This document shows, in pieces, positions 5,231-64,000 of a stretch of 64,000 nucleotides of DNA. The stretch is from Selaginella moellendorffii. Its lineage: Eukaryota > Plantae > Lycopodiophyta. The position numbers and the translations under genes were made by a program. The notes under the pieces are model-generated. The model did no database searches, was not told the DNA's origin, and was given only the letters and a program-made list of their open reading frames with translations. How positions within the stretch are numbered: position 1 is the stretch's first letter; every line of letters begins with the position of its first letter. The stretch covers positions 78,895 through 142,894 of the forward strand of contig NW_003314440.1 in assembly GCF_000143415.4 (NCBI RefSeq), given 5' to 3'.

Positions 5231-7163
<1,933 letters not shown>

Positions 7164-12317: not shown

Positions 12318-12322
12318 GAGTT

Positions 12323-12412
12323 AGCGTGTTTAGAGACACTGTCGCAAAGGCAAGCAAAGAGAATAAAGCGTGTTTAGAGACACTGTCGCAAAGGCAAGCA
12401 AAGGGAATAAAG
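12323..12412. repeat. 44-bp direct tandem duplication in the NDUFA12 3' region
   Basis: agcgtgtttagagacactgtcgcaaaggcaagcaaag(a/g)gaataa present twice. Confidence 0.8.
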
Positions 12413-12459
12413 CAAAGCAAGAAAACGAAGAGCTCATAACTTAGGGTTCTTGGTTGTGG

Positions 12460-13732
12460 ATGGCGGTGGAGGAGGACGAAGATGGAAGCGAGAAGGCGGT
12501 GGTCCAGTACGTAAACTTCAATCAGGATGCTGGGTGCTTTGCGTACTCGACGAGCGTGGGCTTTCGCATCTACAGTTGCGACCCCCTCAAGCAGACGCTG
12601 CGGCGAGATTTGGATGGAGGCGTGGGGATTGTGGAGATGGTGTTTCGCTCCAACATCTTGGGGCTCGTGGGGGCGGCTGCCAGGAACAAGGTGATCATCT
12701 GGGACGACGACCAGAGCCGCTGCATTGGCGAGCTCTTCTTCCGGAGCGAGGTGAGAGCGGTGAGGCTGAGGAGAGACGCCGTGGTGGCTGTGCTGGAGCA
12801 CAAGGTCCATGTCCATAGCCTGTCGGATCTCAAGCCGCTGCATGAGGTGGAGACGTTTGACAACCCGAGGGGCGTGTGTGCGATCTCGCCGGCGTCCACT
12901 ATGTTTGTCCTTGCGTGCCCAGGTACCATGAGCGGAGGTGAGGTCCGGCTTGAATTGTATAGCTTAGGCAAGACGCTGTTCGTCCAGGCACACGAATCGC
13001 CCCTCGCCTGCCTGGCTCTCAGCCAAGACGGGAGGCTACTGGCGACTGCAAGCGTCAAAGGTACCATTGTTCGCATCTTTGACACCAACGACGGAACTAA
13101 GCTGCACGAAGTACGTTGAAAGTTTTACTACTAGTGCTAGACAATGCTTCTTTTGTTTGCTCATCTTTGCTGCCATCTTTGCTGCCTCTACTGCGCAGTT
13201 CCGCCGGGGTGCCGAGCGGGCCGAGATTTTCAGCCTGGCACTCTCTGTCAATTGCCACTGGCTCGCCGTGTCCAGTGACAAATGCACCGTCCATGTGTTC
13301 AACCTGGTCAGGAGCAAGTTTGAGCACAAACCGCGACGGCGCCTTCCCAGGCTCTCGGCTTCTTCCATCTTTTCTCTTGCTGCCAATTCCTCGATGGTCC
13401 AAGGTACGTACATACATACAAATGCTCTTTTTTTTTCTTGTTTTCCATCAACCGAGTGAATACATCCTTTACGACAGGCGTGCTTCCCAGCTACTTGAAA
13501 TCGGACTGGTCATTTGCGCAGTTCCGGCTGCCAGCGGACAGCAGAGCCATTGTCGCGTTTGGGGCCGCCAAGAACACCGTTATCATCATCTGCGGCGACG
13601 GAAGGTAAACCGACCGAGCTGGTAGAAATGTCGCGACTGACTTTGATGGTCACCATCAGCTACTACAGATGTGCATACGATGCCGACCGCGGCGGTGACA
13701 TGGTACAGAAGGAGTTTGCAAAGTTCACCTGA
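12460..13732 (+). CDS. ATG18: ATG18/PROPPIN WD40 autophagy protein
   Basis: [58 protein letters not shown], phosphoinositide-binding FRRG. Confidence 0.9.
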
Positions 13733-14104
13733 TGGTTGGTTTCTCTGTACATAAACAAACACGAGGAGCGTATCATCTCCTCCACCACCATTCTTTCTCT
13801 AGAGCTCTCCTCCGGCGCCATCTCCGCAGCAGCGATGCTAAGGTGATCAACCCAAGGGCAGCTCCCGCGGCAAGTGCCAGCATCATCCATCTGCTGCTCG
13901 CGGGAGGATTGTCCACCACCCCTCTCCTCCCGCTGCCGCCGCCACCCATTCGTTGTATAGGAATTGGAGACGGTTTGATATAAAGACGGTTGTCGCTTGG
14001 CTGCTCAATCTATATGACATGGCAGTATTCAATCCTTATCTCCTAAAACTGTATACCAGCCAGCCAACCATGCTTGATCGAGGTACACAACTGGTTTAAA
14101 TCAA

Positions 14105-47892: not shown

Positions 47893-47964
47893 GTTTAGGG
47901 TTTTAGGGTTTAGGGTTTGGGGTTTTAGGGTTTAGGGTTGGGGGTTTTGGGTTTTGGGTTTTGG
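47893..47964 (+). repeat. Degenerate interstitial telomeric tract (innermost, oldest chromosome end)
   Basis: TTTAGGG/TTTTAGGG/TTTTGGG variants. Confidence 0.85.
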
Positions 47965-48114
47965 AATTGCGATTAGCCAAAAGCACTCCACATTGCTTGA
48001 TCCAGTGGAACTCAAGAATGCTAGAGATTAGCTATGGCAATCTGAGATAAGAGGAAAAACTAGAGAAAATTTATAATGAAAAATTCACTAAAGGGAAAGG
48101 AAATACATTGGCAT

Positions 48115-48167
48115 GACAACCCGAGACCGGTTTTGTCCTTTTTGGGACTCATCAGCCGGGTGTAGTC
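48115..48167 (-). ncRNA. Type-I hammerhead ribozyme with mutated core (GAAA to AAAA)
   Basis: Minus strand ACCCGG CUGAUGA GUCC-caaaaa-GGAC AAAA CCGGUC UCGGGU; 52/53 identical to the copy at 58529. Confidence 0.85.
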
Positions 48168-49019
48168 ACCATGAAAATGGTCTAACCTAGCCCCTCTTTT
48201 CCTCTATTTATACCCAGATGCCTTAAGAATATTCAAGAAGCTTTGAAAATATCCAACTGTTTTAGAATTTCAAAGATCTTGTGGTGGAGTGTGAGCAGGC
48301 AAGCTTGGAGGAACAGCCTCACAGACTTGGTTGTCACTAGCCACTTATCTTATATATTATGATGGTGGTATTGATTGCTATTATTATGAGTTTATTTTCT
48401 ACAAATTTTGGTTTGTAGAAAATAAAATATGAGTTTTAATGACATCTTTGTGCAAGGCACAAGATGTGATAGTCCCTTGAAATTTCAGAAAAATTTCAGA
48501 GAAGAGGTGGTGGTGATTTTAATTAGCTCAGTATATTTCCCTCAAATTTGGTTTGTAGAGAATAGATGTGAACTTCAATGATATCACTGTGCAAGGCACA
48601 AGATATAATAATCAATTGAAATTTCAAAAAAGTTGAAAATTTCAAAGACTGAAATAGGAAATAAACAAGTTTAGTGGTGTGAAGCTTATTCATAGCAGTA
48701 TATTGTGAACGGTGATGGTGATGGATATCAGCCATGCAGCACGTCCTAATTGTTCCTTATCATGTTTAATAGCCAACCTCATAAGTTATTTCAAAGCATC
48801 AGAATATTTCAGGAATATTCCACTCCGACTTTGCAAGAGGTAGCTTATTCATAGCAGTATATTGTGAACGGTGATGGTGATGGATATCAGCCATGCAGCA
48901 CGTCCTAATTGTTCGTCATCATGTTCAAAAAAATATTTCAAAGCATCAGAATATTCCAGGAATATTCCACTCCGAGTTTGCAAGAGGTAGCTTTGGGCAA
49001 GTCCAAGGTAGCTTATCCA

Positions 49020-50940
49020 CGCCAAGTGGGAAGCAAGGTTTGGGGACCGTGTCCAGCATGTGATCACTCTGGGGAGTGAGGAACTTCAGAAATCACCTGT
49101 TTAGGGTTTAGGGTGTTCCCCACATCAAGTGCTGCACTATGGAGAGTATAAGGCAGTTTGAAAATGAGGGGGGCCTGTAGACTATTGCTACTGGATTTGC
49201 GTGATGGAGAGTAGAGCACATTATTTCGGTCCGTATAATGGATTGTCCGGAAAGCTTCAATAAGGAAGGCTCTTGGGTGTCCACGTGCACGGAGACGAGT
49301 ATAGAAAAGCTTGCGAATTGCACAGAAGCTCTCAGGGTTACTCTCTCGTAGGAGGTAACACCGAAGTTCAGCACGAATAAAGGCAATCTTTTGGTGTCGA
49401 GGATGCGTTGAGTTCCATGGAAGATATTGGTATGCATTTAGTGGCTTTTGAAAGGTGGTGGAGTCTAGGCACCTGCATTTCTCAAAGCATGGGCCTTTGA
49501 AAAAATGGATGTCTAGAATATCCATAGATTCAAATGAGATCACTGAGGTGATCTTTATAGAATTGCAGAGGCTTCCATAGCTAGCCAACCAGCATTCCAA
49601 GCTCTCTTTTGATCCATCCCAAATTCCAACACCATCGCTTAAGATATATTGGCCATTTAGAAGAGGTGGCCTTAAACTCGTCCTCGAGGGAGCAAAGAAA
49701 AAGGCAAGCATACACCACAGCAAAGTTTGACCCCATAGCAGTGCCTTGGATTTGAAGGAAATAACTCCCATCGAACTCAACATAATTGTGTTCAAGGATG
49801 AGTCCTGCAGCAGCCATGATAAAGCGTGCTTGCATTGAATCTCCAAAATTGCTATATACAAATTTATGGAGGCAATAGAGCCCTTCACGTGTGGGAATGC
49901 TCGGGTAGAGCGACTCCACATCAAAAGTGAAGAGGAGGCAGTCTTTTGGGAGCTGTTGTTTATGAAGATCATGAAGGAGGGTGTGGGAGTCCATAAGAAA
50001 GGTTTCCTGTTGGAGGAGAATGCCAAAAAGTTGGCGGTGAAGCCATTTTGCAAGTGGCTCCCAAATGTAGCCAACATAGCTAGCAATTGGTCTCCCACGA
50101 ATTGGCTGCTTATGTATTTTTGGAAGAAAATACAACAAACAAGCTTTACGTGGAGGTGAGGTACTTGGCTGTGTTCTTGTCCAGCCACGAGCAAGATTTA
50201 CACTTCAGGAGAAGTTCGAGGAGGCGCTCATGCATGGGTTGATGTGGAATCGACTCAACTCTCTTGTAGACAAGAGGATCATTGAGTTGGCGCATAGCCT
50301 CTTGAATGTACCACGTGCAGTCCAGAACAACTACGCCGAGGTTTTTGTCGGCTGGCTTAATCACAATACTATGATCGTGTCGCAGCGCAAGGACTGCATC
50401 ACGTCTCTAAACCCTAAACCGACCCTAAACCGGTCTCCATCCTCTTAGAAAAGATCGAGGTCTTTTACAACAGGAAAGACGTTGGAGAAGGTGCTCTTGA
50501 ATGCGGGCAACTCGTGACTCCATGTGCCAGGAAGCAGGGGGAGGATCAAAGTTTGGGTTGGGAACCCGAAACTCTGGTATAAGACTGTTGCTGTCCTTAA
50601 ACGAATGACGAAGACGGACTGAGCGTTGAAAGTCATCTAAGCATTCCATAATCTTTTTGGCCGTGAGAGGCACTGGATTAGGAATGAATGAGAGCCCAAG
50701 AGCAAGGAGGCGCTTTTCAGCGGCACTCAACATGCGAGAAGACAAATTGTGAACAGCACCAATCTCCACTCTATTTTCTAGCTGGGAAACTTTTTGATTG
50801 CCGGCAAAATGAAGTAAAGCTTCATGCGGGGCAATCAAAGGTAGCCAGAAACTTTTGCCTTGCCTTTTCTGTCCACAGGCACTGCCGTAACTGGAGAGTG
50901 CGGGCGTTGCTGTGGAGGCGAGTTTCTTCCCAAGCCATAG
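49020..50940 (-). pseudogene. Penelope-type reverse transcriptase, disrupted
   Basis: VHNLSS..LS..EK.LLALGLSFIP, IKPADKNLGVVV, LPKIHK..RPI, FDVESLYPSIP, GTAMGSNFA, QKPLNAYQYLPWNSTHP, RARGHP, CWTRSPNL; frameshifts, YxDD deleted, telomeric insertion. Confidence 0.9.
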
Positions 50941-52518
50941 CGTTGGGTTCGTTCGTGGAGTGGGGTGTTGTTGTGGTGCTGTGAGGGCTGCATCGCTTGT
51001 CCTCTGGGAGGTGAAGGTGGTTTCTGGTTCTGAGTTGGCTGGCGTTGTTGGGCTGCTGGAGGAGGTCGTGGTGTAGTCTGGCGCCCTCGGCCGCTTGGCC
51101 AGTTCGGTTGGGACCGTGGGGGTCGACCGTTTCCTCGAGACTGGCGTTGGCCACCTCTGCCAGTCATGGCTGGCTGGGAACCAAGCACGGTTGGAGATTG
51201 CTGGTGCAAGGGACCCCTTGAAGAAAAACCCGGGGCATCGGAATGGGTGGGAGGAGTCCCAGTAACCACATTCCGCCCCTGCTCGTTTCCCTGCCGTCCA
51301 TGGGTAACGTCACGTTCACCACTGGGGAGAGAAACCTTGCGTGTCTTTGAAGAGCCTGCTTCACGTATGTGGAGTGAGGTATCCGTCCTTTGCTGTCGTT
51401 TGCCTTGTGATCTGGTGCCTCTGCCAGCATCTTCGTGGTGTTGTCTCGGAATTCCACGCTCCCTCTCCTTCCACATCTTGTCAAAGCAGCTCTGGACAAG
51501 CATCTTAACAGTGTCTTCCTTGGGCAGTGTCTCCGCCTTGGCTCGTGCAGCATCCTCTGCAGCTTCCCTTTGCTTGCGAGCATTTTCCTTTTTGCTCTCC
51601 TCAACTCCATATGCCACTGCTCCAATTGCAGTCGCACGTTGGTATTCAGCTATCAACTGATGCTTGCGGGCATTGAGAGTATGTGTGACAGCCTCTCGTT
51701 GTGCATTGCCACAAGCCTGCAAAGCACAGTGAACAAAATCATCCATTCGATCATTGAAACGTTGAGAGAGTCCATGGTTGATGAGATCCGCAAGGGTAGC
51801 AGCCTCAGCCTCTCGTGCCTTGAGCAGAGAATCAAGAAGGCCCTTCAAGTATTGTTCGTGGATTGCTTTGATGCTGGCATCAAGAAGTTCCTGACCGTGA
51901 GAGGTCACCTCAAGCTTTGGCACACGAATGCGAAGGTCTTGAGGGAACTGCTTTTTATCACGGAGCTGAGTCAATCTCTTCACAGCCTTGTGAGCTTGAT
52001 TTAGAGACTTGAGCTCGTTCATGAATTCCTTGATCGAGCATTCAAGGATGGCAGAAAGAGCCTCATCAAGCCTACCAAGTCCCTCAGTCGAGGAGCTAGT
52101 GAGGGCATTGCCAGGGGCAAGGAAAGGTGGCAACTGCTGTGGAAGAGTGTTTCCAGTAGCAGAAATGCCAGCACTATTCTGCAACACTGTGAAGAGGTCT
52201 ACCAATCCAGAGAATGGAGTAGATGATGGCACAGCTGGGGATGAAAAAGGTGGTGGGATTGAAGTTGTTGATGAAAAGAGTGTTGGTAAAGTGGAGGCCA
52301 TGGAGAAAGGTGGTGTGGTGGAGAAGGTTAATGGAACAGGAGGCGAGATGGAGAAAGTTGGTGGAGTATGAGGTGTTGTAGCAAAGAGTAGAGGGCTAGT
52401 TGTCGATGGAGTAGGTGTATGGATGGTTGTAGTTGTGAGCACAGAGGTACATGCAAGCGTAGACATGGGTGCATATGCTGGTGCATGTGGTGAGAGTGTT
52501 GGAACTGACGTTTGAGGT
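50835..52518 (-). CDS. PLE ORF1 (Pro/Thr/Ser-rich N-terminus, central coiled coil, basic low-complexity C-terminus); reading frame is open up to the telomeric cap
   Basis: 543-aa ORF extends in frame upstream of ATG 52466 (PKPPQTSVPTLSPHAPAYAP) into CCCTAAA, so it is 5'-truncated. Confidence 0.75.
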
Positions 52519-52605
52519 GGTTTAGGGTTTAGGGTTTAGGATTTAGGTGCGTTTAGGCGTTTAGGGTCAAAGACACCCCGTGGTGCTGCAATCCGGCGAG
52601 ATCGC
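52519..52605 (-). repeat. Telomeric tract with variant units plus 39-nt PLE 3' terminus (cap copy A)
   Basis: TTTAGGG..TTTAGGTGCGTTTAGGCGTTTAGGG-TCAAAGACACCCCG(T/C)GGTGCTGCAATCCGGCGAGATCGC; recurs at 58369, 59588, 60793, 63223. Confidence 0.9.
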
Positions 52606-53454
52606 TGAACGTGTATGTACATTCCCCATGTCCCAATGGGACTAATACAAAAAATGGGCGTGCCGCCCTCTCAATGAGCTACTCTATGTGATCCTCATAT
52701 GCCACAGCTAGACCTAGTCCTGGAGTGGAAGTGGACGTGGTCGTCTCGAGCGAATCATGTCGATGTCCAAGTCTCCCCCACGAGCTGACCTTAGAACAGA
52801 GTCTGGGGGGCGCCATTGCCAGCGAATCTCGCCACCTCCCAATTTGCCGAAGCATGGGAGCCACCTAGATCTCCACTCCTCGAGCTGCCTCGGTTTCGCC
52901 CGCTCTTTCAGGATGGTGTAGTGAAGACACACCGCTGCAAGAGTGAGTCTCCACCATGATACCACCACTGCCGATATTCTCACTTGTTGCCCATCAAAGC
53001 GACAGTGGTTCCGCGCCTCCCAAAGTGCCTGCAGTCCTGTTGCCCTCCAAATGGACCAGCGCTCTTGGCCCAATGCCTCCCAGATGGACGTCCCAACTTC
53101 AGCCCCTGTTACGTCCCACCGGACTCGCATGTTCCATCGGTGCCGTCCGAAGCAGCGAATACGCCTCCAAGCTGGACCAATGGCTGGGCCTCTAGCTCCC
53201 TCAAACCAGTGGAGGATATCCCCACTCCGAGCCTCGAACTCTGGAATGTAACCGAGTTCCTGCGTCGCCTTGAAGATCTGTCGCCAAACTTCTCTCGCCA
53301 CGTCGCATTCCCATAGGACATGTCGCGCTGTCTCCAGCTCGCCATACTCCTTGCACCGTCGGCATGCTTCTTCCTGGAACCGCTGTCCTACCGGCAGCCC
53401 GTTATTTGCCACCAACCAAGAGGTGGCCTTGACTTTCTCCTGTACTGGTAGTTT
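52606..53454 (-). mobile_element. LINE 3' fragment (zf-RVT C-terminus plus 3'UTR)
   Basis: CRRCKEYGELETARHVLWEC (CCHC), LWEARNHCRFDG; stop 52714; no poly(A). Confidence 0.85.
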
Positions 53455-53516
53455 CCCTAAACCCTAAACCCTAAACCCTAAACCTAAAAACTAAACCCTA
53501 AACCTAAACCCTAAAC
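53455..53516 (-). repeat. Inverted (C-rich on +) telomeric tract
   Basis: (CCCTAAA)n with degenerate units. Confidence 0.9.
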
Positions 53517-53915
53517 TGTCGCTTTGATGGGCAACAAGCAAGAATATCGGCAGTGGTGGTATCATGGTGGAGACTCACTCTTGCAGCAGTGCATCTTCAC
53601 TACACCATCCTGAAAGAGCGGGCGAAACCGAGGCAGCTCGAGGAGTGGAGATCTAGGTGGCTCCCATGCTTCGGCAAATTGGGAGGTGGCGAGATTCGCT
53701 GGCAATGGCGCCCCCCAGACTCTGTTCTAAGGTCAGCTCGTGGGGGAGACTTGGACATCGACATGATTCGCTCGAGACGACCACGTCCACTTCCACTCCA
53801 GGACTAGGTCTAGCTGCGGCATATGAGGATCACATAGAGTAGCTCATTGAGAGGGCGGCACGCCCATTTTTTGTATTAGTCCCATTGGGACATGGGGAAT
53901 GTACATACACATTCA
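53517..53915 (+). mobile_element. LINE 3' fragment, + orientation (inverted repeat of 52606-53004)
   Basis: ORF 53553-53807 nearly identical to the C-terminus of 52714-53415. Confidence 0.9.
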
Positions 53916-53932
53916 GCGATCTCGCCGGATTG

Positions 53933-56900
53933 ATGCGCAAAAAAACCCTAATGTTGGACTTTTTTGGGGAGGAAGTGGAGGAAGGCGCCCAGTACCATGG
54001 CTGCCGTGATCGGAGGCGCAGCCAGAGGTAGAAGAGCGCTCAGGGGAGAGTGTGCAATCTCCCCACACTTGCTACCGTCGGCGGGGGCATCCGCCGTGAG
54101 ATTGAGGGAAGTAGTGTTCCCCTTTTTTTGCTTCTGCTGTGTACTCACTCCCCTGTCAGCAGCATGGAGAACAGCCGCAGGGGAATCACAGCATCCACGC
54201 CCGTCAAACTGAGCTCTCAAGGTCGTGGAGGGCGAGGTAGGGGCCTCAGCATTCGACTCCCGCGAGGAGGCCTGTTACAAGGTCAGGGTTCTGGCACACG
54301 TATAGCAGCAAGCCAGGACAGGAAAGGGCCCTCTGTATCAACGGCCAGAACATTGCTGTGCAAGGCAGCAAGCGAGCCATGCAAGGAAGCAACCCAGCAA
54401 GATGAGAACCACGGGATAGAAGTGGTGGATGTTTCAGGGCTGGGGGATGGCCAGGTCCTGGAACAAGCTGGAAGTAAAAGCCAAGCTAGAGACGAGGTGC
54501 CCATTGAGAGTGGTGGAGAGGACGAAGCTACCTCCCCTCACCCACTTGCTTGGTCATTGGCTGGAGTTCAGGAGCTTCGTGAGGGTCTCGGGCCAGTTAC
54601 AAGTCAGGAAGGCTTGCGGGGAATTATCCCAAGCACTTTCGCCGTCGAGGGGATTCACAGGGATGGATGTCTCACAGAAGTACAGGAGTGGCACACCAGG
54701 GTCAGGGCAGGCGTCACCACCAGAGCAGCAGCACGTGCAGCAGCAGCAAAGCCAGGACGTGGGACAGGAGAACTCAAGTCTGCCCCACCCAGAACGTCCA
54801 AAAACAGAGGGGAACAGGACGATGCACTTCTGTCCTGCAGGCTCAACATGGAAGCCTCACTAGAAGGTGAGTTCACAATCCCCCATTCAGAGGCACAACC
54901 AAGCCAAGAGATCTCCAGAGAGCCAGATCGTTCAGCCGTGGTCCTAGGACTGAACAAGGAGCTGCCTCTTTGGACACTGAAGTTTGCCCACAGATGCTTG
55001 TCAGACCTGACAAACAAGCCCAGAGCTTCACTCCCAGCTTCACCAGCTCGTTCCTCAAGTGTGAGGCCCCGATCCAGCCCACAGGCCCCAGTGACAAGGC
55101 GCTGCACGGACTTGAGACAGGGTGGAGATAGCTCAGATTGTCTACACTTGGTCTTGCCGAAGCCTGCAAGCGGTGGTATAGTCTTTTGGAACAGTGAGCA
55201 GTTCACGGAACAGGTGTGTCAAGCGTCGGCACAGCGAATCCAGCAAGAAGTCTCGCAGCTAACTCACCAACTAGAGGATGGGGTAGACGTGGGGAACATC
55301 TCTCTGTGGGATGCCCGTCGTGCAGCTCTCGCAATTCTAACAGAGAACCTCAGGACTCGGAAGGACTGGGCAGCTGGCACACTCCCTGCTTATGGGAATG
55401 CGTCAAGTTCATGCCCAGCTGGTGGGAACCCCTCGTCCCACCCAGAAACTCTTGCAGACGTGGCTGGGCTCATCCCTGATCCAGTACATGCTAGAGTACA
55501 GGAGGAAACACACCAGGTGGACCCTGCGCACTTGCAACAAGTGAGGAAATCAGATCTGGACTCTCCCACAACACCACATGAGGAGCAGAAGGAGTCGCTT
55601 CCCTCCCCATTCCCACGACTCGACAAGGCAGGGATGCTGGTCTGGGACCCTTGCCACTTTGAGGAAAGGATCCAAAGTTCTCCGCTTCCAGTACGCAAAG
55701 AACTCCAGTCAACATTGATGTGCACAATCAGAGAGCTGGACCTGAACCCTTTGGGAGAAGACCTCGTGTTGGGACCTGCACTGCGTCAAGCTCAAGAATT
55801 AATCACGAAGGCAGTGGCCACACAGCAAGCGGATCTCTTTGATGCATGGGCGCAAGAGCAAGGTGGCAAGGTGGATACCATGCCAACACCAACAGTTGAA
55901 GAGGAACTCAAAGAGCCAGAAACGGAGCCAGAGACGGAGCGCTCACTGGAGGAACAGTCAGATGGCACACTTCAGTTCCAGGACCGTGATGCCTTCAACA
56001 AGAGGAAGACCAAACGTGAGAAGAAGAAAGTGAAGCGAGCAACGCGGCGGAAGCTTAAAACTCTGAGACTTGCCAAGGAGGACCCGGCCTGGACAAACAC
56101 AGTTGAAGCCTTTCTTCAGGAGGAGCACGCTCTGCCAGACAAGAGGACAGAGTCTCGGGTGCACCAGAACCAGGAGGTTGACACCCCGGAGCGAGTGGCA
56201 AAAGCCCAGTCGAGAGTGAGGAAGACTCGGGGCTGCAGAAAGGTGGTGGACACGCTGCACTCCTCGGACGGGAACAGTGATGTTAACAAGGAGCACACCT
56301 CACATAACGTGAACGGGGGAACACCTGGTCAGGCCGAAGTGCACAAGGTGGCAGCAGCAGGGGAAGGTCGAAGTGACTTGATCCATGACGACACAAGAGG
56401 AAAGGCGGTCCCTGTCAAGCTGGCCGAGACTCTTCAAAGAGCAGTAGCAGAGAAGGAAGAGGAACTCCGCAAGAAGGCACTGATCGCTGTTTTCAGGGGG
56501 AAGTTCCCAACAGGTCGCATGGCTAACGATTGGATCAACGCAACGTTAGGCCAGGGAATCCTCATGAAGATGATGCTGCCACATGGAAAGGGCTGCTACA
56601 CAGTTGTCTTTGAGACAGAGGAGGCACGGTCTCAGGCGGAGGCCATGCATGGCCTCATTGACGAGAATTGGGCGGTGTCATTCCACCCATGGATCCCAAG
56701 GTTCACCGCAGAGGACCAGGCTCGTCTCAAGGGCGGGAGCTTTCCAGTGAACATTGCATTGTGGGACGTTCCCATGGAAATGCGGATCACACTGGTGATA
56801 CAGGAGCTGGTTGAAGGAAGTATCGGCCAGATAGCGGCCGGCCTCGACACTGTAGAAGCAGAGGGTGTTCTAGGTCCCATCCGCCTCAAAGTTTTCGTGT

Positions 56901-58276
56901 CAGCCCCGGCTGAAATCCCGACAGAGATCGCAGTGCTAGGCCAGTATATCAGGATCCAAACGGAGAACTCAGAACCTAGATGCAACTTTTGTCAGCGTGC
57001 TGGACACCGGGAGGAGGCCTGCTCAGTCAAGCGGAACAGGTTGGCATCCCAGAAGCCGTTTGAGTTACCTGCAGAGCAGGAGCGGATCTTGAAGGCACGC
57101 CCTCCGGACCAAGCTCCCCACATTCGCTTCCCAGTCGCCCCACCACTCTTGGGCTCATCCTCACAGCCCAAACTGTTCGAGGGACCTATTACGGATGTCG
57201 AAGGAGATGGCTTCCAGCCGGTCCTCCCTCGAACAGTAGGAATGGCGGTCAGGTGGATTCCCCCTAAGCGGGAATTAAGTCCCACAGAGGCGGGAGACTG
57301 GCTGATGTGCCGCGGGAACACAGCCTTCCCAGAGGTCGTCACTATTGGAGACTACCACACACGCATGGAGAGTGCTATCACTGAGTGGACGGGCTTTGCG
57401 AAGTACACTGTCCGAGGCTTCTCCTGGACGAAGCACAGGGGGAAGATGACTGCGGTGTGGACCATCTCCACAGAATGGAGGGCAAGACCCCGTAACTCCT
57501 CACTTTCTTGGAAGTACGTGGCTCCATGACAACTCTCACGCTCGTCACCTGGAACTGCGGGGGACTCAGCTGGACCGGCAGTCGACTCAACAAAAGGGCG
57601 CAGCTCAAGTCCCACATCCGGGAGATTAGCTTAGAAGGAGATATCGACATCCTATGCTTGCAAGAGCACAAAATGACTGTGGCCCCAGACTACACCTTTG
57701 GAATGAGGGGACGGCTCTGGTGGAACCCGGCCACGCAAGCAGTGGCCAGACCAGGAGGGGGCACAGCAGTGGTAGTCTCAACCAAATGGTCTGCTCAGGT
57801 ACGAAACCACCTTGTTCTCGTCCCAGGAAAGGCTCAATTGCTTGTCCTTCACCTCCACTTTGGACGGGTGGGGATAATCAACGTCTATGCACCAACGAAG
57901 AAAGGGAGACGTGCAGAATTCTGGCTGAGTGTGTTACAGTCTACCCAGGGGCAAGCAGATGAATGGCTGGTCCTGGGAGATTTCAACATGGTCGAGGACG
58001 TCTGTGATCGCAGGGGTATGCAGGAAACAATTCAGCCACGTGAACAGAAGCAGTGGAGTCAGCTCATGGACATACTGGGGCTCATGGACCTTCAGCATGC
58101 TGCGGGATTCGCACCACACGCTCACCCTTTTACAAGGCGACAGACAGTATCCTCCCAGTCGAGACTGGACCGGATTTACGCCTCATCTCGCATACGGCAG
58201 GATGGGGGAAGCCTTAAAACGTGGCTGGGATTTGCCTCCTTCTCAGCTCACGACCCCCTCAGATGCGTGATCCAGC
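53933..58276 (+). mobile_element. L1/Tx1-like LINE, 5' portion (5'UTR, ORF1, endonuclease of ORF2), 3'-truncated by telomeric repeats
   Basis: Begins right after the 17-bp target copy at 53916-53932; ORF1/ORF2 ATGA overlap; ends CAGC-TTTAGGG. Confidence 0.88.
54164..57529 (+). CDS. LINE ORF1 (~1120 aa): DUF4283/RRM-like region plus CCHC zinc knuckle
   Basis: GKGCYTVVFETEEAR, HPWIPRF, CNFCQRAGHREEAC. Confidence 0.8.
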   Translation: MENSRRGITASTPVKLSSQGRGGRGRGLSIRLPRGGLLQGQGSGTRIAASQDRKGPSVSTARTLLCKAASEPCKEATQQDENHGIEVVDVSGLGDGQVLEQAGSKSQARDEVPIESGGEDEATSPHPLAWSLAGVQELREGLGPVTSQEGLRGIIPSTFAVEGIHRDGCLTEVQEWHTRVRAGVTTRAAARAAAAKPGRGTGELKSAPPRTSKNRGEQDDALLSCRLNMEASLEGEFTIPHSEAQPSQEISREPDRSAVVLGLNKELPLWTLKFAHRCLSDLTNKPRASLPASPARSSSVRPRSSPQAPVTRRCTDLRQGGDSSDCLHLVLPKPASGGIVFWNSEQFTEQVCQASAQRIQQEVSQLTHQLEDGVDVGNISLWDARRAALAILTENLRTRKDWAAGTLPAYGNASSSCPAGGNPSSHPETLADVAGLIPDPVHARVQEETHQVDPAHLQQVRKSDLDSPTTPHEEQKESLPSPFPRLDKAGMLVWDPCHFEERIQSSPLPVRKELQSTLMCTIRELDLNPLGEDLVLGPALRQAQELITKAVATQQADLFDAWAQEQGGKVDTMPTPTVEEELKEPETEPETERSLEEQSDGTLQFQDRDAFNKRKTKREKKKVKRATRRKLKTLRLAKEDPAWTNTVEAFLQEEHALPDKRTESRVHQNQEVDTPERVAKAQSRVRKTRGCRKVVDTLHSSDGNSDVNKEHTSHNVNGGTPGQAEVHKVAAAGEGRSDLIHDDTRGKAVPVKLAETLQRAVAEKEEELRKKALIAVFRGKFPTGRMANDWINATLGQGILMKMMLPHGKGCYTVVFETEEARSQAEAMHGLIDENWAVSFHPWIPRFTAEDQARLKGGSFPVNIALWDVPMEMRITLVIQELVEGSIGQIAAGLDTVEAEGVLGPIRLKVFVSAPAEIPTEIAVLGQYIRIQTENSEPRCNFCQRAGHREEACSVKRNRLASQKPFELPAEQERILKARPPDQAPHIRFPVAPPLLGSSSQPKLFEGPITDVEGDGFQPVLPRTVGMAVRWIPPKRELSPTEAGDWLMCRGNTAFPEVVTIGDYHTRMESAITEWTGFAKYTVRGFSWTKHRGKMTAVWTISTEWRARPRNSSLSWKYVAP

Positions 58277-58281
58277 TTTAG
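57526..58281 (+). CDS. LINE ORF2 apurinic-like endonuclease domain only (RT lost; stop supplied by telomeric TAG)
   Basis: LVTWNCGGL, LCLQEHK, GGGTAVVV, NVYAP, LGDFN, SRLDRIY, SAHDP. Confidence 0.9.
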   Translation: MTTLTLVTWNCGGLSWTGSRLNKRAQLKSHIREISLEGDIDILCLQEHKMTVAPDYTFGMRGRLWWNPATQAVARPGGGTAVVVSTKWSAQVRNHLVLVPGKAQLLVLHLHFGRVGIINVYAPTKKGRRAEFWLSVLQSTQGQADEWLVLGDFNMVEDVCDRRGMQETIQPREQKQWSQLMDILGLMDLQHAAGFAPHAHPFTRRQTVSSQSRLDRIYASSRIRQDGGSLKTWLGFASFSAHDPLRCVIQL

Positions 58282-58368
58282 GGTTTAGGGTTTAGGGTTT
58301 AGGCGCGTTTAGGGGTTTAGGGTTTAGGGTTTAGGGTTTAGGGTTTAGGCGCGTTTAGGCGTTTAGGG
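58277..58368 (+). repeat. Telomeric tract with variant TTTAGGCGCG units
   Basis: Direct reading. Confidence 0.95.
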
Positions 58369-59534
58369 TCAAAGACACCCCGCGGTGCTGCAATCCGGCG
58401 AGATCGCAGCACCACTTTGTGCAATCCACATTCTCCGTGTGCCGTTGTCGAAGCGGCGTGATCGAGAGCAAGTAGAGGAGGCGAGGGAATGAATTTTCAT
58501 TCATTCGTGAGCGAGGGAGAGGACAAGAGACAACCCGAGACCGGTTTCGTCCTTTTTGGGACTCATCAGCCGGGTGTAGTCGTCTAGTGTCTACCCTAAC
58601 CCTAGCTCGGTGCCGACTCTACTTATATTTTGGCTCTGTCACGTGGCACGAGTCCGTGTGGCGGCCATGCGAAGTGGCGTGGCAGCGTTGGCTCGCAAGG
58701 GTGCGAATGTAGCACAGCTGGTGTTGGTTACTCCACAGCAGTGGTAGTCACAGAGAATGACTTCGGCTAATTGCCGAAGACAGTAAGCGTTCAGCCGGCG
58801 GGTGACATACCTTTGACGGAAGATAACTTGTAAACGCGGCATGATATGATGCATGCGTTACGTCCACAATGCTTGTGTCACTCGTACGTACCCGGCGACG
58901 AAAAACGTGGTCCACTTTGCAGGGAATATTCTGGGATTATTCCGTCGTTGACCGTTGACCCCGCGTTGACCGTGTGTGGACTGGGATGGTGGAGGGCCTG
59001 AGGTCACTCATACATACCCGAAGTCCAGCGGTGGTGCAGGGGAGAGCCATCCCGCGAGCTGTTGGCGTGCATCGCCGATGTCGAAGGAGCGGTACCGTTT
59101 TAACGGAATACACGCTTTTCAACGAATCGTGTGTGGAGTTCAGAGTTGAAACTCACATATTCACGATCGGAAGGAAGAGCGGAATCCAACGGTATATGCC
59201 TTTTTGACTCGGTCAACAGGGATACAGTCGGAATATTGGGGAATATTCCGTTCTGACCGTTGACTTCGCGTTGACCGGGCGTTGACTCGAAAGGGGGGTG
59301 GCCTGGAGTGACTTTGGACATACCTGAAGTCCATCGGCCAGACCCTGGGAGTCATCGGGTATGCGGAGAAGGATGCAAACATATGCTTCCGTGTCTTGCA
59401 AAGTGTGGTACGAGACGTGGCTAAGCTCGCGGAGGGAGCTTGGCCCTGACCAGGAACGAACCGAGGTTCGGGGAGCGTCTCCAGCACGTAATCACTCGGG
59501 GGAGTGTGTCTGCGGGAGCTTCATCCATCACCTG
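58369..59534 (-). mobile_element. Young PLE 3' fragment, unit B (RT C-terminus, 3'UTR, hammerhead, hairpin, cap)
   Basis: Minus strand encodes PKQVMDEAPADTLPRVITCWRRSPNLGSFLVRAKLPPRA* (stop 59421-59423); 1219-bp period with unit C. Confidence 0.9.
58529..58581 (-). ncRNA. Type-I hammerhead ribozyme, intact core
   Basis: ACCCGG CUGAUGA GUCC/GGAC GAAA CCGGUC|UCGGGU; predicted cleavage between 58539 and 58538. Confidence 0.92.
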
Positions 59535-59587
59535 TTTAGGGTTTAGGGTTTAGGGTTTAGGGTTTAGGCGCGTTTAGGCGTTTAGGG

Positions 59588-60753
59588 TCAAAGACACCCC
59601 GCGGTGCTGCAATCCGGCGAGATCGCGGCACCACTTTGTGCAATCCACATTCTCCGTGTGCCGTTGTCGAAACGGCGTGATCGAGAGCAAGTAGAGGAGG
59701 CGAGGGAATGAATTTTCATTCATACGTGAGCGAGGGAGAGGACAAGAGACAATCCGAGACCGGTTTCGTCCTTTTTGGGACTCATCAGCCGGGTGTAGTC
59801 GTCTAGTGTCTACCCTAACCCTAGCTCGGCGCCGACTCTACTTATATTTTGGCTCTGTCACGTGGCGCAAGTCCGTGTGGCGGCCATGCGAAGTGGCGTG
59901 GCAGCGTTGGCTCGCGAGGGTGCGAACGTAGCACAGCTGGTGTTGGTTACTCCACAGCAGTGGTAGTCGCGGAGAATGACTTCGGCAGATCGCCGAAGAC
60001 AGTAAGCGTTCGGCCGGCGGGTGACATACCTTTGACGCAAGATAACTTGTAAACGCGGCATGATATGATGCATGCGTTACGTTCACAATGCTTGTGTCAC
60101 TCATACGTACCTGGCGACGAAAAACGTGGTCCACTTTGCAGGGAATATTCTGGGAATATTCCGTCGTTGACCGTTGACCCAGCGTTGACCGTGTGTGGAC
60201 TGGGATGGTGGAGGGCCTGAGGTCACTCATACATACCCGAAGTCCAGCGGTGGTGCAGGGGAGAGCCATCCCGCGAGCTGTCGGCATGCATCGCCGATGT
60301 CGAAGGAGCGGTACCGTTTTAACGGAATACACGCTTTTCAACGAATCGTGTGTGGAGTTCAGAGTTGAAACTCACATATTCACGATCGGAAGGAAGAGCG
60401 GAATCCAACGGTATATGCCTTTTCGACTCGGTCAACAGGGATACAGTCGGAATATTGGGGAATATTCCGTTCTGACCGTTGACTTCGCGTTGACCGGGCG
60501 TTGACTCGAAAGGGGGGTGGCCTGGAGTGACTTTGGACATACCTGAAGTCCATCGGCCAGACCCTGGGAGTCATCGGGTATGCGGAGAAGGATGCAAACA
60601 TATGCTTCCGTGTCTTGCAAAGTGTGGTACAAGACGTGGCTAAGCTCGCGGAGGGAGCTTGGCCCTGACCAGGAACGAACCGAGGTTCGGGGAGCGTCTC
60701 CAGCACGTAATCACTCGGGGGAGTGTGTCTGCAGGAGCTTCATCCATCACCTG
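59588..60753 (-). mobile_element. Young PLE 3' fragment, unit C
   Basis: Near-identical to unit B, flanked by telomeric tracts 59535-59587 and 60754-60792. Confidence 0.9.
59748..59800 (-). ncRNA. Type-I hammerhead ribozyme, intact core, one stem-I mismatch
   Basis: Same as 58529-58581 except UCGGAU. Confidence 0.9.
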
Positions 60754-60831
60754 TTTAGGGTTTAGGGTTTAGGCGCGTTTAGGCGTTTAGGGTCAAAGAC
60801 ACCCCGCGGTGCTGCAATCCGGCGAGATCGC

Positions 60832-62673
60832 TGAACGTGTATGTACATTCCCCATGTCCCAATGGGACTAATACAAAAAATGGGCGTGCCGCCCTCTCAA
60901 TGAGCTACTCTACGTGATCCTCATCTGCCGCAGCTAGACCTAGTCCTGGAGTAGAAGTGGACGTGGTCGTCTCGAGCGAAGCATGTCGATGTCCAAGTCT
61001 CCCCCACGAGCTGACCTTAGAACAGAGTCTGGGGGGCGCCATTGCCAGCGAATCTCACCACCTCCCAATTTGCCGAAGCATGGGAGCCACCTAGATCTCC
61101 ACTCCTCGAGCTGCCTCGGTTTCGCCCGCTCTTTTAGGATGGTGTAGTGAAGACGCACCGCTGCAAGAGTGAGTCTCCACCATGATACCACCACTGTGTA
61201 AGGAACCAACTCGCCGAGGTGTCGTAGGCTAAGGGAACCCCGAAAGCATGACCAAAATGACAAAGTGTTCATCGGATGGGACCAAGTCAAAGATCGAGTC
61301 CAAGACCGACTCTAGGACCGAGTTTGAGATAGAGTCCAGAATCGAGTCCAAGACCGACTCGGGGACCGAGTTCGAGTCCGAGTTTGAGACCGAGTTCGAG
61401 ACGGAGTCCGAGATCCGAAATCGGGTCCGAGACCGAGTCCGAAGTCGAGTCCGAGGTCGGGCCCGAGATCGGGTCCGAGATCGAGTCCGCGATCGAGTCC
61501 GAGACCGAATCCGAAGTCGGATCCGAAATCGGATCCGAGATCGAGCCAGAGACTAAGTCCAAATACTAATACGGGTCAAGGGGTGAAAGCCCAAAGCGTG
61601 CGTCCCCCAGGGGGGGGGGGCTGCAGGGGGTTCCAAAAGTATAGTAGGGATAGTGAGGTCCAGGAACCAGTTTAGAAGGGACTCTCCAGTGGGGCTCCCA
61701 AACTGACTTGAGGTTGGGACTGGGACCGAGGGGCCTTGGGTGGGAGTGAGCATGGACTTGGTTGGTGCCGGAGGGGCCATCCAAGGAAGTGCTCAAGAGC
61801 AGCTCCCACTCCCGAAAGGGAAACCGATTGCGGTGCTCCCGGCTCATGTGGAGTGGTGCCCCACTTGAGTACCATGCGGCTCATTGGTCCTCGCCCTTCC
61901 TAGGGGCTTGGGCCTTCCTTCGGGACGGAAGTGGGGGGCGAGAGGTACCCATGCCGGGCCGTTAGGCCACGGTGTTTCGCCCCAGCGTCCCGAAGCAAGT
62001 GTTGCACTCAAGACTTGGGATTTAGAGGGTCCCATGATCAAGTCTTGTGGTACCAAGGGATGTTAGGAACCTGGAAGCTTGGTGTGTTTGGCTGCTTGTG
62101 CTTGCGGGGAGTGTAGCCGAACCTTAAGTCCAGTCTAACCCGGGGAGGGGGATTGAGAGTGATTTGGGAATCCGTGGAAGGATGGCTAACGCTCCATTGC
62201 TCGTGCAGTGAGTAGCTGAAACCAAGTAGGAGCTGGTACCATAGGCGAGAACCTTGGCAAGGGAACTTAGCAAAAGCCAAGGCAGTGTTGGACGGATAGA
62301 CGAGGTAAGCTGGCAAATTGGAAAGGAAAAATTTGTGGCTTACACACTGCCGATATTCTCGCTTGTTGCCCATCAAAGCGACAGTGGTTCCGCGCCTCCC
62401 AGAGTGCCTGCAGTCCTGTTGCCCTCCAAATGGACCAGCGCTCTTGGCCCAACGCCTCCCAGATGGACATCCCAACTTCAGCCCCTGTCACGTCCCACCG
62501 GACTCGCATGTTCCATCGGTGCCGTCCATAGCAGCGAATACGCCTCCAAGCTGGACCAATGGCTGGGCCTCTAGCTCCCTCAAACCAGTGGAGGATATCC
62601 CCACTTCGAGCCTCAAATTCTGGAATGTCTCCGAGTTCCTGCGTCGCCTTGAAGATCTGTCGCCAAACTTCTC
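60832..62673 (-). mobile_element. LINE 3' fragment interrupted by a solo LTR
   Basis: 60832-61196 and 62350-62673 are colinear with 52606-53293. Confidence 0.88.
61197..62344. mobile_element. Solo LTR (1148 bp) with internal ~6-bp-period tandem repeats
   Basis: TGTAAG...CTTACA termini, 5-bp TSD CACTG (61192-61196, 62345-62349); GAGTCC/GAGATC repeats ~61265-61560. Confidence 0.85.
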
Positions 62674-63177
62674 AGGGAATATTCGGGAATATTCCATTCT
62701 GACCGTTGACTCCGCGTTGACCGTGCGTTGACTCGAAAGGGAGGTGGCCTGGAGTGAGTTGGGACATACCTGGAGTCCATTGGCCAGATCCTGGGAGTCA
62801 TCGGTTACGTGGAGAGGGATGCAAACATATGCTTCCATGTCTTGCAAAGTGTGGTACAAGACGTGGCTAGGCTCGCGGAGGGAGCTTAGCTCTGACCAGG
62901 AACGAACCGAGGTTCGGGGAGTGTCTCCAGCACGTGATCACTCGGGGGAGTGTGTCTGCGGGGGCTTCATCCATCACCTGTTTAGGGTTTAGGATGTCCC
63001 CCAAGCCTAGCTGCGCACTGTGGAGTGTGTAAGGGAGCTTGAAGGCGAGGGGGGCCCGTCGACAGGCGTCGCTGGAGCGGCGCGAACGTGCAAGGAGAGC
63101 TTGATGTCGCTGGTCATAGGAGATGCCGGAGAAGCAGTGATGGAGGAAGGAGGTCGGGTATCCCCGGGCACGGAGGC
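62674..63177 (-). mobile_element. Young PLE fragment with a longer RT C-terminus
   Basis: LRARGYPTSFL...APLAFKLPYTLHSAQLGLGDILNPKQVMDEAP...SPNLGSFLVRAKLPPRA* (stop 62867-62869). Confidence 0.88.
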
Positions 63178-63261
63178 TTAGGGTTTAGGGTTTAGGGTTT
63201 AGGCGCGTTTAGGCGTTTAGGGTCAAAGACACCCCGCGGTGCTGCAATCCGGCGAGATCGC

Positions 63262-63874
63262 TGAACGTGTATGTACATTCCCCATGTCCCAATGGGACTA
63301 ATACAAAAAATGGGCATGCCGCCCTCTCACTGAGCTACTCTACGTGATCCTCATATGCCGCAGCTAGACCTAGTCCTGGAGTAGAAGTGGACGTGGTCGT
63401 CTCGAGCGAATCATGTTGATGTCCAAGTCTCCCCCACGAGCTGACCTTAGAACAGAGTCTGGGGGGCGCCATTGCCAGCGAATCTCGCCACCTCCCAATT
63501 TGCCGAAGCATGGGAGCCACCTAGATCTCCACTCCTCGAGCTGCCTCGGTTTCGCTCTCTCTTTCAGGATGGTGTAGTGGAGACGCACCGCTGCAAGAGT
63601 GAGTCTCCACCATGATGCCACCACTGTCGATATTCTCGCTTGTTGCCCATCAAAGCGACAGTGGTTCCGCGCCTCCCAAAGTGCCTGCAGTCCTGTTGCC
63701 CTCCAAATGGACCAGCGCTCTTGGCCCAACGCCTCCCAGATGGACATCCCAACTTCAGCCCCTGTCGCGTCCCACCGGACTCGCATGTTCCATCGGTGCC
63801 GTCCGTAGCAGCGAATACGCCTCCAAGCTGGACCAATGGCTGGGCCTCTAGCTCCCTCAAACCAGTGGAGGATA
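63262..63874 (-). mobile_element. Terminal LINE 3' fragment directly capped by the telomere
   Basis: Follows cap copy E (63223-63261); colinear with 52606-53218. Confidence 0.9.
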
Positions 63875-64000
63875 GGGGTTTAGGGTTTAGGGTTTAGGGT
63901 TTAGGGTTTAGGGTTTAGGGTTTAGGGTTTAGGGTTTAGGGTTTAGGGTTTAGGGTTTAGGGTTTAGGGTTTAGGGTTTAGGGTTTAGGGTTTAGGGTTT
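63875..64000 (+). repeat. Terminal telomere array (TTTAGGG)n
   Basis: Perfect Arabidopsis-type repeats to the end of the window. Confidence 0.97.

Follow-up and report, generated by a model that had tools for sequence, protein, structure and literature searches.

The window analysed here, a stretch of 64,000 nucleotides from Selaginella moellendorffii, holds an array of Penelope-like element (PLE) and LINE pieces, and it raises the question of why LINE ends should repeatedly meet one and the same base of a PLE terminus. The original prediction was that an APE-type LINE targets, and duplicates, a 17-bp sequence within the 3' hairpin of an endonuclease-less telomeric PLE. Four regions of the S. 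moellendorffii genome were sampled, including the loci L001, L002 and L004; a telomere tract closes the window and opens L001. The relevant features of the window are the following.

47893-49099, minus: PLE 3' region, autonomous type and AT-rich family; it has a degenerate telomere-like tail and a hammerhead (48100-48174; Rfam Hammerhead_HH9, E 8.4e-07) and is collinear with a stretch downstream of the RT gene, L004:11630-12112
49114-52510, minus: PLE coding part, with a coiled-coil-like ORF at 50835-52466 and, at 49064-50194, half of an RT ORF (the C-terminal one) that reads through a 14-bp telomere repeat (49100-49113)
52542-52588, minus: PLE tail with the hairpin right arm, another small hairpin and variants of the telomere repeat, telomere repeats also standing before it (52511-52541); lies within an 88-bp match to 58344-58431
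52589-52605, minus: 17-mer beside a LINE 3' end, exact match
52606-53454, minus: LINE 3' fragment of 849 bp with the C-terminal part of ORF2 (weak zf-RVT) and the 3' UTR; truncated at the 5' end, where it meets inverted telomere repeats without target duplication
53455-53515: inverted C-strand telomere repeats, 61 bp, joining two oppositely oriented LINE fragments
53516-53915, plus: LINE 3' fragment of 400 bp, upstream member of a head-to-tail LINE pair; 98.25% identical to 52606-53006 inverted
53916-53932, plus: 17-mer between LINE 3' and LINE 5' ends (regenerated target), exact match
53933-58276, plus: LINE 5' part of 4344 bp, starting with the variable filler ATGCGC, an A run and CCCTAATG, and cut at 58276
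58277-58350, plus: telomere repeats on the broken LINE, read from the sequence as healing
58351-59534, minus: PLE 3' unit of 1.19 kb, GC-rich family, with its tail to 58390, natural 5' end at 59534, uninterrupted 17-mer (58391-58407) atop a 15-bp-stem hairpin, and a hammerhead (58520-58587)
59563-60753, minus: second PLE 3' unit, 97.8% identical to the first, with an uninterrupted 17-mer (59610-59626) and a hammerhead (59752-59794)
60768-60831, minus: PLE tail (60768-60814) and 17-mer (60815-60831) adjoining a LINE 3' end
60832-62673, minus: LINE 3' fragment, 689 bp in total (60832-61196 and 62345-62673), split by a 1148-bp solo-LTR-like insertion (61197-62344; 5-bp duplication CACTG; 97.9% identical to L004:2127-3274)
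62674-63175, minus: PLE pieces; 305 bp from the 5' end of the GC-rich unit (62676-62980), joined directly to the truncated LINE, are followed by 13 bp of telomere repeat and, at 62994-63175, by the 3' end of the RT-coding PLE
63198-63261, minus: PLE tail (63198-63244) and 17-mer (63245-63261) adjoining a LINE 3' end
63262-63874, minus: LINE 3' fragment of 613 bp, with the terminal telomere tract (63875-64000) as its immediate cap

The 17-mer, CAATCCGGCGAGATCGC, was found exactly at 52589, 58391, 59610, 60815 and 63245 on the plus strand and at 53916 on the minus strand, i.e. six times in the window compared with 0.00 expected from 100 shuffles. The empty sites that had been noted inside the PLE terminus were borne out at 58391 and 59610, where the 17-mer is uninterrupted and the next letters are AGCACCAC or GGCACCAC. 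At 52589, 60815 and 63245, the plus strand shows next the antisense LINE 3' end (TGAACGTGTATG...), and the 17-mer at 53916-53932 is indeed sandwiched, as claimed, between a LINE 3' end (...ACACATTCA) on one side and a LINE 5' end on the other. All four LINE 3' ends of the window meet the 17-mer at the identical base, and poly(A) is absent at every one of these junctions, in agreement with the initial reading.

Folding placed the target at the top of the hairpin, whose stem measures 15 bp. The site lies 47 nt upstream of the PLE tail that is complementary to the telomere, and in the uninterrupted tails the hairpin arms lie outside the 17-mer. In the PLE sense, the invariant 3' junction falls between GGTGC(T/C) and GCGATC, and the two junction positions are nearly opposite one another across the stem. 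Across the four unrelated genomic regions, 8 of the 9 LINE or partner 3' ends meet the PLE hairpin at the same base. The duplicated target measures 17 bp and may extend to 19-21 bp at both 5' junctions of the non-coding partner described below, whereas the fillers at the 5' junctions differ in all cases. Tandem LINE-17-mer-LINE joints exist as well, including a decayed one of an 84-86% subfamily at L001:22905-22921. The target-site-duplication geometry and the repeated use of one site were upheld at other loci, where three insertions are complete and have the 17-mer on either side.

The host appears to be an endonuclease-deficient PLE, as suggested by its hammerheads, by an endonuclease-less RT gene that sits physically upstream of the target site in L004 and by published reports of such elements with type I hammerheads in S. 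moellendorffii (PMC4209133). The hammerhead at 59752-59794 matched Rfam Hammerhead_1 with 42.5 bits, above the gathering score, those at 58520-58587 and 48100-48174 are of the HH9 type, and a further one lies at L004:4584-4653. The coding part at 49114-52510 is 96.5% identical to L004:8236-12112, its best representative match being P0124 (89% identity, S. moellendorffii, weak RVT_1), and neither of its ORFs has an endonuclease domain; a Pfam search at E up to 0.1 of both ORFs of L004:7191-11740 likewise yielded neither GIY-YIG nor any other endonuclease domain. On the G strand, every PLE unit presents telomere repeats followed by the antisense tail, and cassette-only units of ~65 nt indicate that the tail alone can be added. 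The original assignment of the host as endonuclease-less and telomeric is thus retained, since the hammerhead unit is linked to an RT gene without endonuclease and is tailed by telomere repeats.

A full-length LINE flanked on both sides by the 17-mer within a PLE tail, a copy of the kind to look for, was found at L001:3063-10616, with the 17-bp duplication at L001:3046-3062 and 10617-10633. This 7.55-kb element encodes ORF1 and an APE endonuclease, RT and zf-RVT. Both L001:3063-10616 and L002:9939-18018 carry the 5' and the 3' parts, at 97-98% identity, and therefore the 5' part and the 3' fragments of the window, whose membership of one family had only been presumed, could be united. The window's 5' part is 97.7% identical to L001:3046-7345, and it contains ORF1 (54050-57529) with a CCHC knuckle, 97% identical to SELMODRAFT_404777, and, from 57508, the beginning of ORF2, which includes the APE endonuclease. 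The N-terminal Exo_endo_phos match of ORF2 (Pfam; E 1.6e-14 in the window and 1.2e-14 in L002) covers the model almost end to end, RVT_1 follows at E 2.5e-26 in L002, and zf-RVT is C-terminal, which substantiates the predicted APE-endonuclease type. The best solved RT relative is human LINE-1 ORF2p (E 1.8e-44), with R2 at 1e-15, and the nearest database relatives are metagenomic or plant proteins of 30-42% identity. These similarities point to an affinity of the element with the L1 superfamily of APE-type non-LTR retrotransposons. Each of the seven LINE 3' ends terminates in ...ACACGTTCA (in one case ...ACACATTCA) and directly abuts the target, the poly(A) or A-rich tail typical of L1 proper being missing from all of them. 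Both ORFs are uninterrupted in none of the three long copies.

One LINE copy, that in L002, lies outside a PLE and is flanked by a 16-bp duplication (L002:9892-9907 and 18019-18034). No hairpin is present at this site, which matches the nick region (positions -8 to +7) in 12 of 15 bases (binomial p = 1.2e-5). The 17-mer precedes the 5' end of the copy, and its 3' end, ...GTTCA, is followed by its own duplication without the 17-mer. The presence of a copy at a near-cognate site outside the PLE indicates that the element is sequence-specific, though not absolutely, and the 16-bp duplication shows what appears to be an intrinsic sequence preference combined with a staggered cut.

The same base of the PLE is also used by a non-coding partner of 1.64 kb, two copies of which, both flanked by the 17-mer, are located at L004:4765-6441 and 12215-13890. 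Its longest ORF has 107 aa, no pol III-type head was detected in it, and it shares with the LINE a 43-nt 3' end (77% identity). Within this end, one pair of a small stem-loop shows a compensatory change (G-C to A-U), and the stem-loop is no more stable than shuffled sequence. Between the two partner copies, 4 of 1639 insert positions differ (0.24%), compared with 7 of 158 flank positions (4.4%; Fisher p = 8.7e-6), and the duplication copies the local target variant, with GCAATC... in both duplications of the first copy and GCGATC... in both of the second. Because the inserts diverge so little and the flanks so much, and because a private variant is common to both duplications of one copy, the two copies represent independent insertions, and segmental duplication can be rejected for both. 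This comparison has power for the partner only, since divergence among the LINE copies, 2-3%, is similar to that among the tails. We infer that the partner is mobilised in trans.

Taken together, these sequence comparisons suggest that an L1-superfamily APE LINE and its non-coding partner probably integrate by target-primed reverse transcription at one position of the PLE hairpin, and the view of a parasite on a parasite, with a LINE inserting into the hairpin of a telomeric PLE, is largely supported. Bottom-strand nicking by the endonuclease would occur at GC^AGCACC and top-strand cleavage at G^CAGCACC, in the palindrome's mirrored arm, and the RT would recognise the 3' end common to LINE and partner; the hairpin may be recognised by the LINE endonuclease itself. 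As the duplicated 17-mer would still include the left arm, the site would remain usable in its upstream copy and head-to-tail arrays could form, and read-through transcripts of such arrays might then be copied. Host PLEs are added to chromosome ends, and LINE 3' pieces still on the PLE tail would be spread or trimmed by the turnover of terminal arrays, i.e. by terminal addition, erosion, healing and rearrangement, and it is plausible that the LINE hitch-hikes on PLEs by terminal addition. The window's three 5'-truncated LINE fragments have no 5' duplication and could descend from few events rather than represent separate endonuclease-mediated insertions.

The orientation of these three fragments, which is that of terminal additions, also suits an account in which one or a few ancestral LINE insertions in a PLE tail were multiplied through terminal addition of chimeric RNA and recombination reshuffled the arrays, without any site preference of the LINE. 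One truncated LINE is capped by telomere repeats and another is fused to an internal PLE position, the cassette-only units represent a tail addable by itself, and two private variants are common to W_A and W_B. Such a history is nevertheless unlikely, given the independent insertion of the partner copies with duplications matching the local variant, the occurrence of two different elements at one base, the five different 5' junctions and the staggered cut suggested by the near-cognate site outside the PLE. It is more improbable still that the joints arose without endonuclease, by an RT that stalled at the hairpin while copying the PLE tail, switched to LINE or partner RNA and then switched back. 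Although the junction positions almost face each other across the stem and other joints resembling template switches occur in the array (e.g. 62673/62674), a return to a point exactly 17 nt downstream, with the 17-mer copied again, is a contrived assumption, the 16-bp duplication of the L002 copy lies at a site without hairpin, and the LINE possesses an almost full-length APE domain.

That the 17-mer is instead a terminal repeat of LINE and partner acquired by the PLE tail is very improbable: every complete copy has it on either side, and it also precedes the 5' end of the L002 copy, but that copy lacks it at the 3' end, uninterrupted PLE tails fold it as the hairpin top between outside arms, and its variant is equal on both sides of each partner insert and different between sites. 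Integration at the hairpin by target-primed reverse transcription therefore remains the preferred explanation. A further step is possible, if rather doubtful, namely that transcripts running from the LINE through the hairpin top and the 47-nt tail are competent for endonuclease-independent addition to G overhangs by the PLE or LINE RT, which would make telomere, PLE, and LINE with partner a three-tier chain helping to build and heal spikemoss chromosome ends.

Site-specific LINEs are mostly known from animals and insert into multicopy genes of the host, into telomere repeats or, in the case of Tx1L, into a DNA transposon. Tx1L is an APE-type LINE whose highly specific targeting endonuclease directs it to one site inside another mobile element (PMC1950540). 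The Selaginella LINE is likewise of the APE type and inserts at one sequence of a multicopy mobile element, but its host is a telomeric retroelement of a lycophyte, its target is the palindromic top of a hairpin, its duplication is 17 bp long and its site is shared with a non-coding partner. The insect LINEs R1/R2 (rDNA) and TRAS/SART (telomere repeats) also insert precisely and repeatedly at one nucleotide of a multicopy target, TRAS/SART residing in telomeric arrays and having a sequence-specific APE endonuclease (PMC1919474, PMC7265360). In contrast, the Selaginella LINE hits a structured part of another retrotransposon, neither a host gene nor the telomere repeat. TRAS/SART carry poly(A), which the Selaginella LINE does not. 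UnaL2 and UnaSINE1 are a stringent LINE/SINE pair with a common 3' end; the Selaginella partner shares just ~43 nt of the LINE 3' end and uses the same target, but differs in the pol III-type head, none having been detected in it. Zepp of Chlorella and HeT-A/TART/TAHRE of Drosophila are LINEs that accumulate at chromosome ends (PMC5537684). The terminal array in Selaginella is also partly LINE sequence; however, Zepp and the Drosophila LINEs attach to chromosome ends or insert into copies of their own kind, whereas the Selaginella LINE would arrive via the tail of another element, and telomerase-type repeats persist.

No published description of a LINE or partner specialised on a PLE 3' hairpin was found in the literature consulted, to which the 2007 PLE paper does not belong. 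What appears to be new is a lycophyte L1-type LINE with a non-coding partner, both specialised on the structured 3' element of a retroelement that extends chromosome ends. It provides a naturally palindromic target (~15-34 bp) with a putative defined nick position for work on how APE endonucleases come by sequence or structure specificity, an example of nested parasitism in which a LINE is confined to a safe genomic niche, and a handle on the building, erosion and healing of terminal retroelement arrays in a telomerase-positive plant.

Endonuclease-deficient telomeric PLEs, namely Athena, Coprina and the Selaginella elements, were reportedly described by Gladyshev and Arkhipova in 2007, and hammerheads in PLEs were described by Cervera and De la Pena in 2014. 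The host element fits this group in its RT without GIY-YIG, its type I hammerheads, its 3' end made of the reverse complement of the telomere repeat and its orientation, which suits priming from the G overhang (PMC4209133, PMC8557442). The host protein is certainly an RT; with its weak RVT_1 match, it had 2295 relatives at E up to 0.001, in the alignment of which the DD is invariant; its profile matched RT palms, and TERT only faintly, and its Atlas neighbours were rotifer HTH_animal/RVT_1 clusters.

The 17-mer CAATCCGGCGAGATCGC, which the original prediction had proposed as a target in the 3' hairpin of a telomeric Penelope-like element (PLE), occurs at six exact positions in the window, against none expected in shuffled sequences. 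The layout was re-checked by reading positions 52001-64000 and by self-comparison, and the LINE 3' ends do adjoin the 17-mer at one base; as had also been noted, poly(A) is absent from all LINE/17-mer junctions of the window.

Copies of the 17-mer in the window
58391 and 59610: uninterrupted, within two 1.19-kb units that are 97.8% identical to each other
52589, 60815 and 63245: beside a LINE 3' end, with an identical repeat 3' end at all three
53916: inverted, with a LINE 3' end on one side and a 4.3-kb sequence on the other

A perfect telomere tract (63879-63997) closes the window, and the upstream 40 kb carry PPR-DYW and further plant genes. Positions 1-46000 contain four intronless PPR genes, one of them with a DYW deaminase domain, as well as an R2R3-Myb, a PHI-1/EXORDIUM-like gene and an APC1 C-terminal piece. 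At 42-46 kb, immediately inside the terminal retroelement array, the sequence is very AT-rich (GC 0.28-0.30).

Further loci of the same species were taken from the 2011 assembly, where they were reached via annotated proteins: L001 (another chromosome end), L002 (interior), L003 and L004. The window, L001, L002 and L004 have only repeats in common and no unique flanks, and they are therefore separate regions.

Rfam hammerhead ribozymes were found on the minus strand of each PLE unit in the window (58520-58587, 59752-59794 and 48100-48174). The 17-mer is followed by a 47-nt tail and then by telomere repeats. On the G-rich strand, telomere repeats precede the antisense tail in every unit; this orientation would be expected of an element RNA whose telomere-complementary 3' end anneals to the G-overhang. 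For the minus-strand ORF at 49064-50194, 2295 relatives were found at E values up to 0.001, the best being P0124 with 89% identity, and these relatives show a weak RVT_1 match together with the invariant reverse transcriptase (RT) residues. A single-sequence search of solved structures with the PLE RT gave no match; the profile of its relatives matches RT palms and does not separate PLE from other RTs. At L004, the hammerhead-type 3' region and the hairpin site directly follow the RT gene and a 902-aa coiled-coil-like ORF, all in the same orientation, and no endonuclease domain was found in either of these PLE ORFs. PMC4209133, citing Gladyshev and Arkhipova 2007, reports for this species EN-deficient telomeric PLEs that bear canonical type I hammerheads. 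Because of the hammerheads, the orientation of the tail, the RT gene, the lack of an endonuclease domain and the published PLEs, the host is accepted here, on sequence grounds, as a putative endonuclease-less PLE. The PLE ORF1 region at 50433-52498 is 99.4% identical to L004:8236-10301, at an unrelated locus, which suggests that the PLE has been active very recently. The 3' end of the PLE RT frame includes a 14-bp telomere repeat both in the window (49100-49113) and in L004 (11616-11629), and repeats of this kind are the exact break points of the 1.19-kb units and of 62981-62993.

The 4.3-kb window sequence holds an ORF of 1159 aa and the first part of an APE endonuclease (Pfam Exo_endo_phos, E 1.6e-14), and a Selaginella moellendorffii protein matches the LINE ORF1 at 97% identity. 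The membership of the 5' part and the 3' fragments in one family, which had been left open, is settled because both parts are present, at 97-98% identity, in full-length copies at L001:3063-10616 and L002:9939-18018. These copies contain ORF1 and an ORF2 with Exo_endo_phos, RVT_1 and zf-RVT domains, and the solved structure closest to ORF2 is human L1 ORF2p (E 1.8e-44), the element having the defining features of the L1 superfamily except for poly(A). Both ORFs are uninterrupted in none of the three long copies. When the C-terminal 320 aa of ORF2 were used as a protein query for further LINE copies no match was obtained, and the ORF2 search retrieved a single Selaginella model, P0004, whose locus (L003) was rejected as a further copy, since it represents a different family (68% nucleotide identity) in a non-telomeric setting and is uninformative.

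A full-length LINE within a PLE and between two 17-mers, the arrangement anticipated for a site-specific insertion, was located at L001:3046-10633, with the left arm of the hairpin upstream and the tail downstream. In addition, L004 harbors two copies (4782-6424 and 12232-13873) of a 1.64-kb non-coding partner element that sit at the target base of the LINE with the 17-mer on both sides. No ORF longer than 107 aa and no pol III-type head were found in the partner, and the sequence that it has in common with the LINE is restricted to the 3'-terminal 43 nt or so, at 77% identity, apart from a resemblance of the 5' starts, which consist of an A run and then (G)CCCTAA (window 53933-53960; L004:4782-4800). 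This (G)CCCTAA start resembles one telomere repeat unit. A small 3' stem-loop, with one compensatory pair between the two elements (GTCCC...GGGAC versus ATCCC...GGGAT), folds in both of them with a stability not above that of shuffled sequence. A weak MIR156-like hairpin match on the minus strand of the partner (L004:4839-4928 and 12288-12377; 31 bits versus a gathering value of 62; E 0.005) is probably due to chance. A census of 17-mer sites in the four regions sampled yielded 18 true sites, and the same base is joined by 8 of the 9 LINE or partner 3' ends in these regions.

Sequences to the left and right of the 17-mer at the 18 sites
PLE left arm / tail (uninterrupted): 3
Cassette-only units, cut 3 nt upstream of the 17-mer: 2
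PLE left arm / LINE 5' end: 1
PLE left arm / partner 5' end: 2
LINE 3' end / tail: 4
Partner 3' end / tail: 2
LINE 3' end / LINE 5' end: 3
Inverted LINE 5' end / tail: 1

Between the two copies of the partner, 4 of 1639 insert positions are different; for the flanks, counting 94 nt of the left arm, 47 nt of the tail and the 17-mer itself, the figure is 7 of 158 (Fisher p = 8.7e-6). Moreover, the first copy has a private variant (GCAATC...) in both of its duplications, and the second has the canonical form in both. These variant-matched duplications and diverged flanks indicate, therefore, that the two copies are separate insertions and that the 17-mer is a duplicated target, as originally read, segmental duplication being excluded for this pair. 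One copy is hosted by a 981-bp GC-rich unit and the other by 113 nt fused to an autonomous PLE 3' region. At the LINE 5' junctions, the fillers preceding the A run are all different (5 of 5). A tandem joint at L001:22905-22921, from an 84-86% subfamily, shows CpG decay in its 17-mer, and the site has therefore been used over a long time. The alignment of the four window 3' fragments was also inspected; its 365 bp hold too few informative sites for a tree.

The L002 copy of the LINE is located in the integrase-like part of an LTR retrotransposon, flanked by a 16-bp duplication, GCGAACTATATCTGTT, and its 3' end (...GTTCA) lacks the 17-mer, which is therefore not part of the LINE. Hence, the view that the 17-mer is the terminal sequence of the LINE fails at this junction, and it is also contradicted by the variant-matched duplications of the partner. 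With the two sites aligned at the nick, 12 of the 15 bases between -8 and +7 are shared by L002 and the PLE (binomial p = 1.2e-5), which argues for an intrinsic sequence preference of the LINE. The proposed flank specificity thus holds as a preference but not as an absolute rule, since this copy lies outside a PLE. Multiplication of a single LINE/PLE chimera fails to account for this near-cognate off-target copy or for the contrast between partner inserts and flanks, and template switching at the hairpin fails to account for a 16-bp duplication at a hairpin-free site. In its behavior the LINE resembles other sequence-specific APE LINEs. At the 5' end of the L002 copy, 11 nt of LINE 3' end and the 17-mer precede the normal start, which fits the product of a read-through transcript of a head-to-tail pair; the window pair at 53516-58276 looks alike, with 400 nt from its upstream member. 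No empty paralogue of the L002 target was found among the sequences examined.

The PLE tail, as RNA or DNA, forms a hairpin whose stem has 15 bp and whose loop is CGCC. The 17-mer makes up the top of this hairpin, and the left and right junctions are almost opposed across the stem. The predicted cuts fall, strand-wise, in one arm sequence (bottom GC^AGCACC, top G^CAGCACC). The 3' junction is invariant, and the position of the top-strand cut may range from 17 to 21 nt, 2 or 4 nt beyond the 17-mer also matching the right arm at the partner 5' junctions. At L001:25477-25532 a LINE 5' end is joined inverted to the 17-mer (15 of 17 nt) and the tail, with the other junction beyond the locus, an arrangement compatible with insertion primed from the other palindrome arm.

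Three truncated LINE fragments of the window (849, 689 and 613 bp) are without a 5' duplication, and they adjoin, respectively, inverted telomere repeats, an internal PLE position (62673/62674) and the terminal telomere, which caps the last of them. For these reasons, turnover of the array accounts for them better than three separate insertions by the endonuclease would. Such turnover would combine rearrangement either with the addition of chimeric RNA at chromosome termini or with erosion followed by healing. With the fragments read as turnover products, the proposed hitch-hiking of the LINE to chromosome ends on the PLE is therefore plausible only. The hairpin top and the tail are kept in every truncated LINE/PLE chimera, and cassette-only units amid telomere repeats (L001:1852-1905, L001:2386-2450 and L004:6632-6711, the last truncated within the 17-mer and additional to the 18 sites) consist of 3 nt of left arm, or part of the 17-mer, and the tail; these chimeras and units suggest that the last ~65 nt of the PLE may be enough for terminal addition.

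At 62673/62674 the LINE is cut 689 nt from its 3' end and fused 305 nt from the 5' end of a GC-rich PLE unit, through either a template switch or an insertion-associated deletion. The segment 53455-58276 comprises 61 bp of C-strand telomere repeats, 400 bp of LINE 3' end, the 17-mer and 4.3 kb of LINE 5' end, is oriented as the array of an opposite-type chromosome end, and looks like a head-to-head fusion or inversion with a break in the endonuclease ORF at 58276 and telomere-repeat healing. A 1148-bp insertion in a LINE 3' fragment (61197-62344), with TGTAAG...CTTACA termini and a 5-bp duplication (CACTG), is probably a solo LTR, and copies of it are present at L004:2127-3274 (97.9%) and L002:7961-9088.

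In full-text searches of the literature, no LINE or partner targeting a PLE hairpin was found, in Selaginella or elsewhere. The spike-moss EN-less Chlamys-type PLEs that target 28S rDNA (Craig et al. 2021, PMC8557442) are a different case from a LINE and a partner on a PLE hairpin. Exact-pattern metagenome scans gave no match for the LINE 3' end or for the 17-mer plus right arm. Of the 31-mers sampled from the LINE/PLE stretch, 40% are present in a sequencing run that bears the label of a different organism, the run representing either a close relative or a labelling variant.
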